A stretch of DNA of 64,000 nucleotides from positions 186,001 to 250,000 of the forward strand of contig MU008205.1 in the NCBI GenBank assembly GCA_010909165.1. Reading direction: 5' to 3'. The translations under genes were made by a program, and so were the position numbers. The notes beneath the pieces were generated by a model, which did not search any database, was not told the DNA's origin, and saw only the letters and a program-made list of their open reading frames with translations. This document shows positions 43,851 to 56,340 of the stretch, in pieces (the stretch's first letter is position 1; the number at the start of each line of letters is the position of its first letter). Origin of the DNA: Anthoceros angustus. Its lineage: Eukaryota; Plantae; Anthocerotophyta.

Positions 43851-44564
43851 CACTATTGATTGATTGAAGATTATTTGTCTTGTTTGAATTTTACCTTTAC
43901 ATTCGTCCAGAAATATATATAGTTATTATATTTCAGTCCCATGACGAAAATCCGTCCTTAATGGACTTTAATAAAATTCTTCTTCTTCTTCTATTCGCAC
44001 CTACCGAAAAAAATAATATGAGCCCGGTTATGGTGGTCGCCCACCATGGAAATGGAACTTTAGAAGTAAATATATATGTAGGTGACAGCAAACGGTAGAT
44101 GAGCGGACAGTGACATTGCTTGATGGATTGATGGATAGACGGAACGGTGTCGTATGGGACGGATGAGGTTAGGCGAAATGTGTGGATCACTCCTTGGATG
44201 TGGATACTTGGAGTAAGGGGCGGCGTTACTTGAACTTTTGAAGCACTTGCTTCATGTGGTGGTTGGGAGGAGGAGGAAGCAGCATTTTTTGTTGGTGTTA
44301 AAAGAAGCCCGCGCATGTCCTCGGTGCCCCGTATGATGAAGGCGCGCTCACCTTGCCTCGGATGCTTCTGCCAACTCTGGGCGGAGCATCGGAAACAGGA
44401 ATCCCTCCACTCCGTATGCTCACAATCCAGGCGGAAGGAGGCGTTTTGAGCTTCCGGGCTCCCGCTTTCTCCTGTCCTCATGCTCTGAGACTGGAGCTGT
44501 GGCTGTAGGGATTCGTCGGATGGATCAACTGGATGAAGTGAAGAAGATTGTGGATAACAGTGCA

Positions 44565-47231
44565 ATGCTGCGCTTTGCAGCCATTGCAATGACAGACTGG
44601 CTTGGTTTACCGTCATTCCCTATGGTAGCCAGTGTTGCCCCTCCCCGCCCTGGTCCGGTTGCGCCTTGTTCCAAATGCTGGGGTACGTCCAGGGCAGGGA
44701 CTCGTTCCGTGCAAGTTCCGGGGCTCCAGCCTGGGCATGGTCTCGGCACCTCTACTTCGTCGGAATTCCACCCGTTGATGAGACTGGTTGAAGAGTATGT
44801 GGCTGGAGGTCGGTACAGGCTCGAAGGTTTCGGAAACAGGAAGCCGGAACCGCTCTTTCAGACTGTGCGAAAGCGAGGTGTGTCCAGTACCTCCCGCCGC
44901 CTTCGGCGAGCCCTACATCGGCTTGCATCCAGACATCAGCGGTAACCTCAGGGTAGCTCGAACATTTCCTCACATCCGGATGCTTGAATTGCGCTCGAAG
45001 CATCTTGAAGCCTGTTATGTGATTCGATGGGGTGGTGGTGTTGTTTCTCAAGCTTGAGTTAGCGCCTGTGTGTGTTGTACCGTGAGACGAATGTTGCTGA
45101 CGATGGGGTCGCGTGTCTGTTTACAGGGACATGCGTGTCGGAGTACACGTCGTGCATCTGGCAAGTGGCGAAGAAGTATCCCTTCGGAGTCGTGCAATTT
45201 TCCCTCTTGCCAGCATCGCCAAGCTGCCAATCATGGTCGAGGCAGCTCTGCAGTTGCAGGAATCAGAGGTGAGCTTGAGACGCTGCTGCTTGGTGGGAAT
45301 GTGTGGTGGGCGCCTGGTGAGAATGAGGTGAACTAGCTAAGGCAGTGCTTGAGGTTAAGTCTGATGTATGGTCGACGGTACTCCACTGCAGAAAAGAAAT
45401 GGCTCCCTGAAACTAAACTCGGCAATCACCGTGAAAGAAGGAGACAAGTGCATTGGTAGTGGCCAACTGTGGAAGAGGCGAAGGTTTGCGTGCTATGCAG
45501 GCCCAGTTTCTGGTGGAGTTCCATGGGCTACCATCTCCAGCTAATACACTTTCGTGTTCTCCGTTGTGTGACTGCCAGTAATTCCAAAGTAAGTTTCGGA
45601 AAATGTTTGGAGCTCATGCAGACAATTTCTGACAACACAGCAGCCGACCTGGTTAGTGACATCCTGTCTCCCATTTTTCTAATAGGCGGACTCTTGTTCA
45701 AAGAAAATGTCTATAGGCAATGAAACTTGTGTGTAAAGTTGTGGCTGTTTGATTGCAGGTGCTGCAAAGAGTAACCCTCGCCAGAGTCCAGCAGCGTATT
45801 GTGAATCTTGGCTTGACTGCAACGGATATCAATCTTTCTCAACGGCAGGTGACGCATGTTCTGCTGTACTTCTGCTAAGCCACTCGCTCCTTTCCGACAT
45901 CATCGAAGCAGTCCTTCGCCCGTGATGCCAATAGCTCTTGTGCAATCCATTTTAACATGAATATTCTAATCAGTTTGCATTTTTGGACTACAGGCTTACC
46001 TCGTGGCTATGGGCAAGGCTCCTAGTATGAAGGGGATGTCATCCCGGCAGATAGCCAATATGTATGTTCCATAACAGACATTCTTGGCTGATCGTTGTCT
46101 GCTCTTGTCGGTAGACAAAGCCCCTTTCTTTTCACTTCTCATCCTATTCCCTGAAAGTAGTGGATGTTGCTGTCTTGTAGTCTTGACAAAGTCAAAGTCA
46201 ATCTGTTTAGCTTCTCCTCTTGACATGCTTTCTAGCCCAGGTGGAAAAGATTCACACCAGATGAACGCCTGCAAGTAGCACAAGAAACTGAGGCTGCAAA
46301 TAGAAATTTAAGCTTCCTTGAGTTCAATGGGATTGAGGTCTCTGCTGAGAAGTTACTGGAGGTACTGATTGACACTGCTGGTACTGATTGATTGATCTGA
46401 TTGACACTCCTGGCACTGGGTGGCCACATGGTGGCAGTGAATATCTTAGTTGTCTCACACATGGGGACGTCTGCAGCTGGAGAAAAGCTCCCGCAATTGG
46501 AGAGACAATCTAGCAGTTGCTGCAGCTGTGGACAACAGCGGCTCTCCTGCCGACATAGCACACTTACTGTCGATGCTGGCACGTGGAGAAATTCTTTCGC
46601 AGGCCTGGACGAGCCACTGCCTATCTATTCTTGCCAAACAGGTTTGCATCTCAGAAACACAAGCTACTCTAACATGTGCTGTTCCCATCTGACCTTCACC
46701 CATCACGTGCATTCAACTTAAGCTGCTTGCTCCTACTCATGGCTCTGACGAACAGAAATGTGGCCAACGACGTCTCCCTTGCTACCTTCCTGAAGCCACC
46801 CCAATCTACCACAAGACCGGGAGGTAATGTTTTTATCCCAACTTTTTTTTCACCCTCCCTGTGAGAAACTGTCCATTGCTCCAACAATCGGCAGTGTTTT
46901 GGTAATCAGCGTTGCAGGGGTTGCACATGATGCCGGCATTATTCAAGTCGGAGGTGGACGTGATCATGTCGTTGTCTCGGCCTTTGTGGATGGCATCCAG
47001 CGGGTACGGCCAGCGTCCTTCTTTCCAGCTGTTTGGCGTCTTTGTGTTGTGGACCCCTTAGACGCCACGCTGTTGTCATATTTGTGAATGTTTGCTGGAA
47101 CTGACCTGCTGGTTCTCCCTCTGGGTACTGTGCAGCATCACGAGCGGGAAGCTGAGGCTGTTATTGCGCGAATCGGCCGTCTGATATATAAAGCATACTC
47201 AACCCAAGAAATGCGCCCGAGAGCTGTCTAA
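44565..47231 (+). CDS. Class A beta-lactamase / PBP-like serine hydrolase, 11 exons, N-terminal extension (start codon uncertain: 44520, 44565 or 44622)
   Basis: Exons: start-44941, 45127-45268, 45392-45483, 45579-45651, 45759-45848, 45994-46061, 46241-46337 or 46361, 46477-46641, 46756-46823, 46910-47003, 47136-47231. All introns GT-AG and phase-compatible. Motifs FPLASIAK, SDNTAAD, HKTGS..HDAG. Confidence 0.88.
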
Positions 47232-47404
47232 AGTAGAGTTTGCCGTTCGTCTTCGCAGGATTCGCGTACCAATTCTTGCCCACGTATGTGGCTCATTTTT
47301 TTTGGTCAACTGTAAATTCTGTAAGAATGGGCAGTACCCAAATGGAGTAACAGTATTCCCTCTGCAGTCCACTTGCCAAACTACTGCAGCTCCCTCCGAA
47401 GTCC

Positions 47405-49030
47405 ATGGCGGTCGTGGGATCTCTGCCTATGCCTGTGGCGACCGGCGAGTCTTCTTGTGAGGATCGAGCACTGAAGCCTCTTTGCTGCCCTCCCAGTGAG
47501 TCTCCTTGTGAGGATCGAGCACCGAAGCCTCTTTGTTGCCCTCCCAGTGAGTCTCCTTGTGAAGATCGAGCACCGAAGCCTCTTTGTTGCCCTCCCAGTG
47601 AGTCTCCTTGTGAGAATCGAGCACCGAAGCCTCTTTGTTGCCCTCCCAATGGGGGAAGACAAGCGATGGCTATGGCCAAGGCAATTGCACAGACGAAATG
47701 GGAGGGTGAGCCCTGGGAAAAGCTGGAGTTGATGCACAAGGAGATTCTCCTTGGTGCAAAGCCAGGACATGTGCTTCTGAGGATGCAGGCGAGGGGTATC
47801 TCGCATATCGATATAGACCTCATCCGCTTCAACCACTTCAACAAGAATGTTCCCCAAGTTGTCCATGGCGTTGAGGGCCTGGGCGTCATAGAAGTGGTGT
47901 GCGAATTCTCGGGGCCCACATGTGCAACTCTGCAGCACAGTGTTGTTACGCATCTTTACCCGTTTTGACTGTTGGGTGTTGTCATCAGGTGGGAGATGGC
48001 GTGACTGGCTTCACAGTGGGCCAGAGAGTATGCCCTTTTCAGCTTCGCAGGTTCCAGGCCACAGGCCAAGGCACATGGCAGCAGTATCTGGAGGTGCCTG
48101 CAACCGAAGCCTTTCCCGTTCCAGATCACATCACCGACGAGGTTGCAGCCCAGATCTTCGGAACTCCCTTCACGGTGGTCTCCCTCTTCGAGCAGCTGCA
48201 GATTCCCAAGGGCGAGTTTCTGATCCAAGCCGCTACCAACACTGTAGCCGGCAGGTACGTGCTTCTCTCTTTCCAGGAAACGCTGAGTGCAGCTTCACGT
48301 GGTAAGGGGGTGGCGGTGGGTTGGTTTAGGATGGTGATCCAGTTAGCCAAACACCTCGGCATCAAGACCATCAGTATCATCAGAGGACTTCGAGGCGGCG
48401 TGAAGGAGGAACTGCAGGAGCTGGGAGCAGATGAAATCATCACAATTGCAGACGGTACTCGTCGGTGAACGTTACCGACTCGAACCGTTATCGTTCCATC
48501 CAAGCCTCTCAGCTGAGGTCCTTCGATGACTGTGCAGACATACCGGAACGAGTGAGGCAAATCACCGGCGGCAAGCTTGCTTATGCTGCTGTAGATGGAA
48601 TGGGAGGAAAACTCACACAGGTTTGGTTCATAAAATGTATCCACAGCTGGCCAGTATCAGGTTTCAGCAACGTTAACCTACGTTGTACCAACTTCAATTT
48701 TTCATGGCTTGGTGGGACTGTGGCCAGCAGCGAGTGGCAGCTGCCGTGAGAGATGGGGGACAGCATTTCGTGTACGGGCTTCACTCTGGAATCGACTTCG
48801 AAGTGCCGGAGTCTGAGCTGGCAAGGCATGTCAACGTCCAAGCCTTGTCGCTGGCCAGCCACTTGAAGACGCCTGGAGACTGCAATCGGCTTGGCAACAT
48901 CGTACTGGACTTGTCGAAAAGTGGGGCTCTCAAGCTTTCTGGGGAGAAAACCTTTGGACTGGAAGCCTTTCAGGAAGCTATCAAAGAGTCAATGATAGCT
49001 AAAGAAAGCAAAGTTTTGATCGTTGGCTGA
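47405..49030 (+). CDS. Medium-chain dehydrogenase/reductase (quinone-oxidoreductase / enoyl-reductase-like), 5 exons
   Basis: Exons 47405 (or 47666)-47896, 47989-48254, 48330-48454, 48538-48620, about 48731-49030; GVEGLGVIEVVGDGVTGFTVGQRV, GTWQQY, IQLAKHLGIKTI..ELGADEII, AVDGMGG. Confidence 0.88.
47447..47650 (+). repeat. 51-bp tandem repeat, 4 copies (ESPCEDRAPKPLCCPPS)
   Basis: Four near-identical units, in frame with the MDR coding sequence. Confidence 0.95.
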
Positions 49031-51415: not shown

Positions 51416-53140
51416 TTAATGTAAGCGCTTTAGATTAATTAATACTAATTACTTAAAGACAAGTCATTAGATTAATTAATGCTAATCAAACACTAAACCC
51501 AAGTGCAGAGAGTAGTGTCACACGGTATGACATCCCTTAAGTTCCCCATATTTGCGGGCTTTGATTTCAAGCCCACGATGTTCCATCTACAGGTCATAAA
51601 TCTTACTACTACCACTCTCAATCGGCTCTATTTTTGGCCTCAGCTCAATCAGGACGTCCGAGATTATGTCCTCCTTTGCAACTTATGCCAATGCAACAAA
51701 GCTTGTCACCAACGCCTTGCCGGCCTGCTCCAACCCTTGCCTGTCCCTTTACTGCCCTGGGAGCAAGTCACACTTGACTTCATAACCGGATTGCCTCGCA
51801 ATGCTACTGGCTTTGATGCGTTGCTGGTCTTCACGAATAAGCTTACTCATCAAGTGCTCCTTGCCTCCACTCGAGACATGCTCTCCGAACAAACCGACTT
51901 ATTGGAAAGTGGTTTATCGTGCCCATGGCCTCCCTCGCTCTCTTGTGAGCGATCATGATTCAGTTTACGCCCCGCCTCGCAAGCGGTTCATCGTGTCTTG
52001 GCACCAAGCTCGTATGTTCAGCCTTTTATCCTCGACGGATGGTGCTACTGAGCGAGCTAATCAAGTTTTAGAGGATATACTCCGTGCTTATGGTGCACCA
52101 AACTCGGTGGCTGGACTTTCTCCACCTCGTTGAGTTTGCCTACAACAATGCCCCTAACGCCTCAACCCGAGTTACTCCATTCTTGTTCAACAAAGGTTTT
52201 CACCCCGCACTTTCGCTTCCTTGCCTTCCGCTGCTTGTGTCCCTGCTTGTCGATTTTCTCACCCAACGTGTCCAAATCGCAGTAGGCTCGCTTGCCCATG
52301 GAACCCAAAACCGCCAAGCCCAATCGCCAATCATCGTCGTCGTCCTCAAGAATTTGCTACGACTACATTAATATGGCCTAGAATCAATGAGTTTAAGGGG
52401 AACTTGAAGGGTGAGCAAGAGAGACGGCATGTGGCTTGATGCCCGGAGGACGTATTGAGATAGTCNGTGGTTTATCGTGCCCATGGCCTCCTCGCTCTCT
52501 TGTGAGCGATCATGATTCAGTTTCGTCCGCCCGGCAAGCGGTTCATCGTGGTCTTGGCACCAAGCTCAGTATGTCTCGCCTTTTATCCTCGACGGATGGT
52601 GCTACTCGAGCTAATCAAGTTTTAGAGGATATACTCCGTGCTTATGCGGTGTGCACCAAACTCGGTGGCTGGACTTTCTCCACCTCGTTGAGTTTGCCTA
52701 CAACAATGCCCCTAACGCCTCAACCCGAGTTACTCCATTCTTGTTCAACAAAGGTTTTCACCCTCGCACGTTGCTTTCTGCTTCCTTGCCTTCTGCTGCT
52801 TGTGTCCCTGCTGCTTGTCGATTTTCTCATGGCCACGCATTGCAGGCGTTCTCGCATGTTGAAGTGTCCCTTGCATTTAAGAACTTGGAATCCTGCACTA
52901 GGCTTGCGCAGAATCAAATAGCTCCAGCTGGCCGCCAGACGATGCGCGGATTGCTGCGACATCCTCATGAGGCACGTAGAGCACGCTGCCCACAAACACT
53001 CCGTACCCCATATCGAAAAGGGATGTCATACCGTGTGACACTACTCTATGCACTTGGGTTTAGTGTTTGATTAGCATTAATTAATCTAATGACTTGTCTT
53101 TAAGTGATTAGTATAATTTAATCTAAAGCGCTTACATTAA
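51416..53140. mobile_element. Gypsy integrase fragment flanked by inverted copies of purine tract + LTR start
   Basis: YFWPQLNQDVRDYV..C..CQ; PWEQVTLDFITGLP; TDGATERANQVLE; VEFAYNN; 51416-51538 is the reverse complement of 53018-53140. Confidence 0.8.
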
Positions 53141-55365: not shown

Positions 55366-56340
55366 TTGTTAAAAGTAATTTTGTTAATAATTAAAGTTGT
55401 GTCATGTTGCATTTATTACGGATGGCTAGTAGATGATATGGTAATTCGCTCCATCTTATATAGTGAAACACAAACATATCCTACTAAACCTAGAAGTATC
55501 TATGGTTCCATTCAAGATGATTCAAACACGGAGAAGAATGGAGTTGATTGGAATAAGGCTCCATTTTATACGAACTTTAGTTCTATATCAATAGTATCTC
55601 CCTTATCTGAGGGAGCATGGAGTCCTCCTCCCACAATATTTGGGCAAACAAATTCATTGGATCTCCTTATTCTAAACTATTGTAGCGACCATGTGGCTGT
55701 GGCATCCACCAATTTATGGATCGACTTCGACGCAAGTTGTGGTAGCCGTTTTCAATCTCGTCATCGTTTTACTTCTGGTACATTTTCAAGTAATATGAAA
55801 TGTGCCGCTGGTAATACCACTGGTTTGGTAACGAGCATTTATGTTTCTTCTCAAGAAGGTGACACTCATCAAGATGAGATTGACTTTGAATGGGTTGGAA
55901 ATAAAAAAACTTTTGTCCAAACCAATTTTTTTGTCAATGGCATCTCTAATCCTGAGCACATAAGTCAGACCCACCTAGGATTTGATTGTTCTCAAAGTTG
56001 GCATACTTATACCATATCTTATACAGACGAACAAATACAGTAAGTACTATATATTATTGCTTCTTCTTTAAATTGTGGGGATAAGTATTTGTTGCTAATA
56101 TTTAGCTTTTTTTACAGATGGCTTGTGGACGATACTATTATTCGAACTGTGACAAGAGAACAACAATTATCAATCAATGATACCTATCCAAGCCAACCTA
56201 TTTATTTGTATGGTTCCATATGGGATGCATCGGCCATAGTAAGCGGACATTGGTGAATTTGGGACCACAAGGATCAAGCTTATGTTGTACAATATAACAA
56301 CATCACTCTTCAGGGTCAAGTTGTAGAATTGGAGATTTGA
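55366..56340 (+). pseudogene. GH16 endoglucanase, EG16-like, with premature TGA (5' end uncertain)
   Basis: SGTFS..KC..GNTTGL..SSQEGD..QDEIDFEWVG..VQTNF..LGFDCS..H.Y; intron 56040-56117; GSIWDAS..W*IWDHKDQAYVVQY. Confidence 0.8.

Follow-up and report, generated by a model that had tools for sequence, protein, structure and literature searches.

We analysed a 64,000-nucleotide (nt) stretch of the genome of the hornwort Anthoceros angustus (GenBank assembly GCA_010909165.1, contig MU008205.1, positions 186,001 to 250,000 of the forward strand), hereafter the window, to whose first letter all coordinates refer. At 44520-47231 (+) lies a nuclear gene of 11 exons and 10 introns whose product belongs to the Beta-lactamase2 family (PF13354). 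It is an intact, expressed and spliced eukaryotic gene, and it probably encodes an enzyme resembling penicillin-binding proteins (PBPs), of bacterial but not cyanobacterial origin, and not a beta-lactamase.

The gene model was built by hand from a reading of the genomic sequence and its three-frame translation. All ten introns run from GT to AG with compatible phases, and a script that scanned each exon singly found zero in-frame stops. The model was compared over 44300-47500 with contigs from sequencing run X2, presumed to be RNA and drawn from the same sample as the best-matching DNA run, X1. X2 held 54% of the sampled words, near the expectation for exons plus untranslated regions (UTRs), and its contigs omitted exactly the ten introns at 100% identity; those of X1 were unspliced throughout the interval. 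The acceptor of intron 9 at 46908-09, with which the product reads K-T-G-S, was confirmed by RNA at the 46909/46910 boundary. A sequence-only reading of the window had proposed these eleven exons, joined by ten phase-compatible GT-AG introns into an open frame, and had named beforehand a lack of RNA support for the splicing as grounds for abandoning the proposal; the model and the X2 contigs bear it out at every intron. The features are as follows:

44300..44519 (+), 5' leader, at least 220 nt; the X2 RNA contig begins at or before 44300 and enters exon 1
44520..44941 (+), exon 1, probable start at 44520; conserved N-terminal helix (about residues 1-30), Ser/Pro/Gly-rich disordered linker, and a conserved basic stretch leading up to the domain's first helix
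44942-45126 (+), intron 1, absent from RNA contigs
45127..45268 (+), exon 2, SxxK motif (Ser 45212-45214, Lys 45221-45223); PF13354 profile positions 1-41, E 4.7e-7
45269-45391 (+), intron 2, absent from RNA contigs
45392..45483 (+), exon 3, subfamily motif D-K-C-I-G-S-G (alignments A1 and A3)
45579..45651 (+), exon 4, SDN at 45628-45636; PF13354 profile positions 71-93; equal in exon length and phase in Closterium
45759..45848 (+), exon 5, Gln at the Ambler-166 equivalent (45840-45842) within L-S-Q-R-Q
45994-46061 (+), exon 6, first part of the helical insert (about 75 residues), which is for the most part encoded by exons 6 and 7
46241-46361 (+), exon 7, insert; invariant Trp 46242-44 and invariant Glu 46335-37
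46477..46641 (+), exon 8, end of the insert, A-A-V-D-N and the helices after it; PF13354 profile positions 119-167, E 1.7e-6
46756..46823 (+), exon 9, H-K-T-G, with KTG at 46813-46821; the next Ser codon is split by intron 9
46910..47003 (+), exon 10, beta strands beyond KTG; RNA-supported
47136..47231 (+), exon 11, C-terminal helix and stop TAA at 47229-47231; RNA-supported

The 3' UTR spans about 127 nt, the RNA contig reaching 47358. Searches with the window gene were made by single exon, and its orthologue P0092 (482 amino acids (aa), from a Logan transcript), which aligns with it end to end in every exon at 72% identity overall, stood in for it in whole-protein scans and models. Between the two coding sequences the proportion of synonymous differences (pS) was 0.71, a saturated value, that of nonsynonymous differences (pN) was 0.16, and the ratio of the corresponding rates (dN/dS) was at most 0.08; the gene is under strong purifying selection. 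The sequence-only reading had also argued against bacterial contamination, with which the introns, the splicing and the plant-type neighbours, an intron-containing ADH-like gene (47405-49030, +) and a GH16/XTH-like open reading frame (ORF; 55366-56043), all agree. Contamination and pseudogene readings are ruled out by these features together with purifying selection.

Transcripts of two sister organisms, C and D, which are about 95% alike, showed matching joints for most of the ten introns; displaced joints were found at divergent exon ends, in introns 1 and 3 in D, and in introns 3 and 6 and the stretch across exon 9 in C or in both. The transcript of organism D (run X21) placed the donor of intron 1 a further 11 nt downstream (window 44942-44953). 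Used on the window sequence, that donor leads to an in-frame TAA, and it may mark an unproductive isoform or a lineage-specific change. Intron 6 was kept in a low-depth RNA contig of all three species (X2, X19 and X21; window 46034-46270), which could represent pre-mRNA or regulated retention.

The reading frame is open from 44340, and its earliest ATG, at 44520, stands 15 codons (45 nt) before the ATG at 44565. We place the probable start at 44520 because P0092 begins at the homologous Met (its transcript has an in-frame stop five codons upstream) and because the first 33 codons are under purifying selection (pN 0.13 against pS 0.65 between the window and P0092). The product would then be 476 aa long (1431 nt), with a pre-domain extension of about 140 aa; the sequence-only reading had recognised the extension but put it too short, at about 100 aa. 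A full-length AlphaFold2 model of P0092 predicts a helix at residues 3-26 (predicted local distance difference test, pLDDT, 74-78) and disorder at residues 27-118 (pLDDT <50), after which the domain begins. Ser, Thr, Pro and Gly abound in the linker, which is the fastest-evolving part of the protein (dN/dS 0.25). Upstream ORFs (uORFs) crowd the window leader (e.g. 44315-44449, 44362-44508 and 44480-44488) and likewise the leader of the orthologue (L001:1-485), a shared feature that hints at translational control. The longest uORF has 48 codons in the window leader (44254-44508) and 108 codons in L001, and the encoded peptides have no obvious conservation.

Family, active site and fold

A check against PF13354 proposed with the sequence-only reading came out in its favour: exons 2, 4 and 8 matched in collinear profile order (29.8 bits for exon 2 and 27.9 bits for exon 8, against a gathering threshold of 22 bits), and P0092 scored 156.5 bits over profile positions 1-213, which makes it a member. 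The acylation motifs read from the sequence are all in place as SIAK (45212-23), SDN (45628-36) and KTG (46813-21), corresponding to the class A set Ser70-x-x-Lys73, Ser130-Asp-Asn and Lys234-Thr/Ser-Gly. Single exons matched the NCBIfam model bla_class_A (NF033103) weakly, and whole proteins scored under its equivalog cut-off of 200 bits, with 108.9 bits for P0092, 122.1 for the Klebsormidium protein and 114.8 for the bacterial protein P0010.

AlphaFold2, run on P0092:112-482 with 72 sequences, returned a domain model with pLDDT 93.5 and a predicted template modelling (TM) score (pTM) of 0.92. Its top Foldseek match was PBP-A of Thermosynechococcus elongatus (Tll2115, PDB 2J7V/2J9O; TM 0.91 on the target), followed by LRA-5, a soil-metagenome class A beta-lactamase 'precursor' (PDB 8EO5), and class A beta-lactamases; by VIA-align, LRA-5 (Z 33.9), PBP-A (Z 33.8) and others were tied at Z 33-34. 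PBP-A was also the best PDB match of the family profile (E 3e-58), aligning in two pieces that flank an insert, and single window exons gave marginal PDB matches only. The insert, profile positions 165-243, had no counterpart in any solved chain. It comprises about 75 residues, whose codons lie in exons 6 and 7 and at the beginning of exon 8; the model gives it helices with pLDDT >90, and it occupies the place of the omega-loop as a helical subdomain confined to this subfamily. The models thus depict a three-part protein, in which the helix at the N-terminus is followed by about 90 aa of disordered linker and then by a domain of about 345 aa with the class A beta-lactamase/PBP-A fold.

The column equivalent to Ambler position 166 was fixed by residue counting, V163 of the LRA-5 chain being Ambler V166 (title of 8EO7) and L158 of PBP-A being numbered from the catalytic S61 (PMC11189452). 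In the profile alignment to solved structures these two residues face a single subfamily column, which holds Asn in bacteria and Gln in streptophytes, and neither Glu166 nor the ExxLN omega-loop motif was found in the window protein or its subfamily. Because of the Gln at 166, the missing ExxLN motif and the orthologue's score of 109 bits against the 200-bit cut-off, the product is, as judged from its sequence, not a canonical class A beta-lactamase. The earlier label of a class A beta-lactamase/PBP-like gene thus holds in its second part, with a PBP-like active site and PBP-A as the nearest solved structure, and fails as a canonical class A assignment. The subfamily has motifs of its own, namely D-K-C-I-G-S-G (of which I-G-S-G is invariant and the Cys nearly so), an invariant Trp and Glu in the insert (the Glu invariant in 15 sequences and nearly so in 72), A-A-V-D-N and Y-H-K-T-G. 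Two Cys are near-invariant across its bacterial and plant members, in D-K-C-I-G-S-G (exon 3) and in W-T-x-H/Y-C (exon 8), and may be joined as a disulfide or act as a redox switch.

Comparison with known systems sharpens this placement. PBP-A is a DD-carboxypeptidase/endopeptidase without the omega-loop Glu and a very poor beta-lactamase (PMC11189452); like the window protein it has SxxK, SDN and KTG and no Glu at the 166 position. The two differ in that PBP-A is only 22-28% identical, has a short loop in place of the helical insert and Leu at the 166 position instead of the Gln/Asn of the subfamily, and is a bacterial, periplasmic protein without the N-terminal helix and linker; its substrate-selecting Glu96 (PMC11189452) aligns with an invariant Gly. 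The window protein therefore has the defining feature of the PBP-A family, a class A fold without the deacylating Glu, but neither its short omega-region nor a close cyanobacterial kinship, the nearest sequences coming from Eremiobacterota and Armatimonadota. LRA-5 has the same fold at 27% identity, with Val at 166, but has a normal-length omega-loop and neither the insert nor D-K-C-I-G-S-G. Canonical class A enzymes (TEM, CTX-M, PER, TLA; NF033103) share the fold, PF13354 and three of the four catalytic motifs, but have Glu166, Asn170 and the omega-loop, all of which the window protein lacks. To the same subfamily belong uncharacterised 'serine hydrolases' of Eremiobacterota (Xenobia/Vulcanimicrobiota) and Armatimonadota metagenome-assembled genomes (MAGs), which have the insert, D-K-C-I-G-S-G, A-A-V-D-N, Y-H-K-T-G and Asn or Gln at 166 at 37-42% identity, and among which the streptophyte clade is nested; they are intronless, 350-400 aa long, and have Sec-type signal peptides where the plant proteins have the helix and linker.

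These features bear on the proposal that the gene encodes a working beta-lactamase, which would shield plastid peptidoglycan synthesis from microbial beta-lactams by means of another general base, e.g. the insert Glu. Such an enzyme would be in keeping with the class A fold, with the intact SxxK, SDN and KTG motifs and with the conservation of the insert Glu, and also with the fact that carriers of the gene have beta-lactam-sensitive plastid division or a peptidoglycan toolkit. We nevertheless judge it quite improbable, given the subfamily-wide Gln/Asn at Ambler 166 without ExxLN, the score under the NCBI class A equivalog cut-off, and the fact that the nearest solved relatives, PBP-A and LRA-5, also do without Glu166, the former being a very poor beta-lactamase. 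Of the two functions that the sequence-only reading had put forward, protection from microbial beta-lactams is accordingly the weaker, because the protein is not a canonical class A beta-lactamase (no Glu166 or ExxLN, and an orthologue that scores under the NF033103 cut-off).

Relatives, age and origin

An exhaustive search was made with exon 8, and word searches then named the relatives. The streptophyte proteins comprised those of Mesostigma viride (P0007), Klebsormidium nitens (KFL_000850290, P0093), Closterium (P0116 and P0117) and Mesotaenium endlicherianum (P0002), the last a misannotated model without the SxxK exons, whose own word search gave few relatives. The bacterial relatives were many 'serine hydrolases' of 350-400 aa from Armatimonadota and Eremiobacterota MAGs. 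Five products of the exon 8 search (P0001, P0004-6 and P0008) were dropped as low-complexity, Ala-rich false positives. The word searches brought up no named protein from mosses, liverworts, lycophytes, ferns or seed plants, which is suggestive of absence and not proof of it, and among Archaeplastida the exon 8 and word searches turned up the subfamily in streptophytes only. In the literature on plants, hornworts and surveys of horizontal gene transfer, we found just a passing, undescribed 'beta-lactamase' in one transfer list. A 5-kb Logan contig of another species (L088:1713-4331) encodes P0118, 81% identical to P0092; its 3' half contains short introns, and its residues 1-214 are contiguous, with introns 1 and 2 either lost or spliced from a partly processed transcript.

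The annotated genes of Klebsormidium and Closterium were rebuilt exactly from their genomic loci, and introns were mapped on a common alignment. Eight of the ten window introns match Closterium in column and phase, with identical exon lengths of 73, 90, 68, 121 and 68 nt, and three of the ten are common with Klebsormidium, two more lying within a few nucleotides. Because intron positions and phases are common to these lineages, the intron-bearing gene is, on this comparison of gene structures, older than the split of Klebsormidiophyceae from the land-plant lineage and vertically inherited.

A motif scan of 185,579 GTDB species genomes gave 95 confirmed stretches, of which the best 80 were kept, representing 79 distinct loci. 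These belonged to Eremiobacterota, under the labels Vulcanimicrobiota, Xenobia or UBP9, to Armatimonadota (a single locus), and to Thermoleophilia, Chloroflexota, Acidobacteriota/Aminicenantes and Bacillota; no cyanobacterium was among the 79. In a tree of 87 rows, the six streptophyte rows formed one clade (Shimodaira-Hasegawa-like approximate likelihood ratio test, SH-aLRT, 99) inside a 47-row clade otherwise made up of Eremiobacterota and Armatimonadota. In a tree of 46 rows, the streptophyte clade had support of 100/100 with Mesostigma basal, the enclosing clade had 100/98, and a Xenobia trio branched outside the streptophytes and the remaining bacteria at 93/97. We read the direction as from bacteria to streptophytes because the wider bacterial diversity lies outside the enclosing clade. 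As far as sequence comparison can tell, the data favour an ancient transfer, with Eremiobacterota/Armatimonadota-like bacteria as the source and the streptophyte stem as the recipient, over cyanobacterial endosymbiotic descent. The sequence-only reading had left the source as either endosymbiotic or horizontal and had suggested a phylogeny: the single streptophyte clade within the Eremiobacterota/Armatimonadota group supports bacterial ancestry, and the trees and the 79 loci favour the horizontal route over the endosymbiotic one.

The rival source, the cyanobacterial ancestor of plastids, would require the Eremiobacterota likeness to stem from sampling gaps or later exchange among bacteria. 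In its favour, a cyanobacterial origin is established for many genes of plastid peptidoglycan, and the nearest solved structure is cyanobacterial PBP-A. That protein, however, is 22-28% identical and has no insert, while the Eremiobacterota/Armatimonadota proteins are 37-42% identical and have it; moreover, the 79 GTDB loci include no cyanobacteria and the subfamily was seen only in streptophytes among the Archaeplastida searched. Taken together, we regard a cyanobacterial source as highly improbable.

Several MAGs titled 'uncultured Burkholderiales' (L004, L005, L008, L015 and L044) encode proteins near-identical to, or nested among, those of Candidatus Xenobia/Eremiobacterota, and one cluster, P0151, bears both names; these titles are probably taxonomic mislabels.

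Candidate role in plastid peptidoglycan

What is known of plastid peptidoglycan in algae and non-seed plants comes chiefly from the genes that make it (Mur enzymes, MraY, Ddl and a class A PBP), and enzymes for its trimming, opening or recycling are, to our knowledge, poorly catalogued. Among the carriers of the gene, surveyed hornworts retain peptidoglycan synthesis genes (PMC8964177), and one report (PMC3398972) describes chloroplast division in Closterium as sensitive to inhibitors of peptidoglycan synthesis. These observations are consistent with the following scheme. A relative of present-day Eremiobacterota/Armatimonadota would probably have passed the gene to streptophytes in a single event that preceded the divergence of Mesostigma; the gene would then have gained introns and descended vertically to Klebsormidium, Zygnematophyceae and the hornwort lineage. 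By analogy with PBP-A, its product may be a DD-carboxypeptidase/endopeptidase, inhibited by penicillin, whose substrates would be stem peptides of plastid peptidoglycan or of its turnover products, presumably within the plastid. Beta-lactams would acylate and block such an enzyme and would not be destroyed by it; Glu166 is the residue with which true class A beta-lactamases free themselves of the drug. Taken whole, this reading, i.e., a streptophyte PBP-type enzyme of Eremiobacterota/Armatimonadota-like origin that serves as a beta-lactam-blocked DD-peptidase of plastid peptidoglycan, has in our estimate about an even chance of being correct.

Several points weigh against it. The first 15 residues of the window protein are acidic (27%) and belong to the conserved helix, unlike a classic transit peptide, and no obvious transit peptide is seen in the modelled N-terminus, where this helix gives way to a disordered linker. 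The invariant insert Glu could take the place of Glu166 as general base. Plastid peptidoglycan also occurs in mosses, liverworts, lycophytes and ferns, and because the searches yielded no named protein from these groups, the patchy land-plant distribution means that the enzyme cannot be a universal component of the pathway. The bacterial proteins P0010, P0023 and P0063 have no conserved gene neighbourhood in common, and nothing in their surroundings points to peptidoglycan. As for the origin, the support for nesting within Eremiobacterota (93/97) is not maximal, and the trees were built without cyanobacterial PBP-A-like sequences.

Some of the same observations suit a hydrolase or binding protein with a new role outside plastid peptidoglycan, acting either on other D-amino-acid peptides, esters or amides or on the cell walls of associated bacteria; its site could be the cytosol, a membrane or the extracellular space. 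Besides the N-terminus and a distribution that does not track the peptidoglycan toolkit, the large insert reshapes the surroundings of the active site, and a Gly stands at the position of the substrate-selecting Glu96 of PBP-A (PMC11189452). Such a role is nonetheless unlikely in our view, as strong purifying selection has kept the catalytic motifs strictly conserved, PBP-A, alone among the close relatives in being characterised, is a DD-peptidase of peptidoglycan, and the bacterial members have signal peptides, so they act beside the wall.

The gene is of consequence in several ways. Expressed and strongly conserved, it is a candidate remodelling gene of plastid peptidoglycan, open to testing in a hornwort amenable to transformation, such as Anthoceros agrestis (PMC8717380); some of the wall enzymes of streptophytes may derive from non-cyanobacterial bacteria; and the insert-bearing, Glu166-less subfamily, uncharacterised in bacteria, bears on the divergence of class A beta-lactamases and DD-peptidases. 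A bolder version, which we put forward tentatively and consider rather doubtful, is that the protein, with its new helical domain at the place of the omega-loop, represents an unlisted, streptophyte-wide chloroplast peptidoglycan hydrolase of Eremiobacterota-like and not cyanobacterial source, a target of beta-lactams, kept among land plants only or mainly by hornworts. If true, it would be among the direct targets of beta-lactams that underlie the antibiotic sensitivity of chloroplast division.

Neighbouring features

The ADH-like gene on the same strand, of the ADH_N/zinc-dehydrogenase type (47405-49030, +), begins about 50 nt past the mapped end of the 3' UTR at 47358. Its exon 1 contains four tandem 51-nt units, 96% alike (47447-47648), encoding a Cys/Pro-rich repeat of 17 residues. 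At this repeat, RNA and DNA contigs both contain a joint that goes back by 51 nt, so that the number of copies may be variable or may have been reduced by collapse during assembly. Downstream of the ADH-like gene, at 51500-53100 (+), lie ORFs of integrase-like appearance, presumably remnants of retroelements, one of which contains an assembly N.

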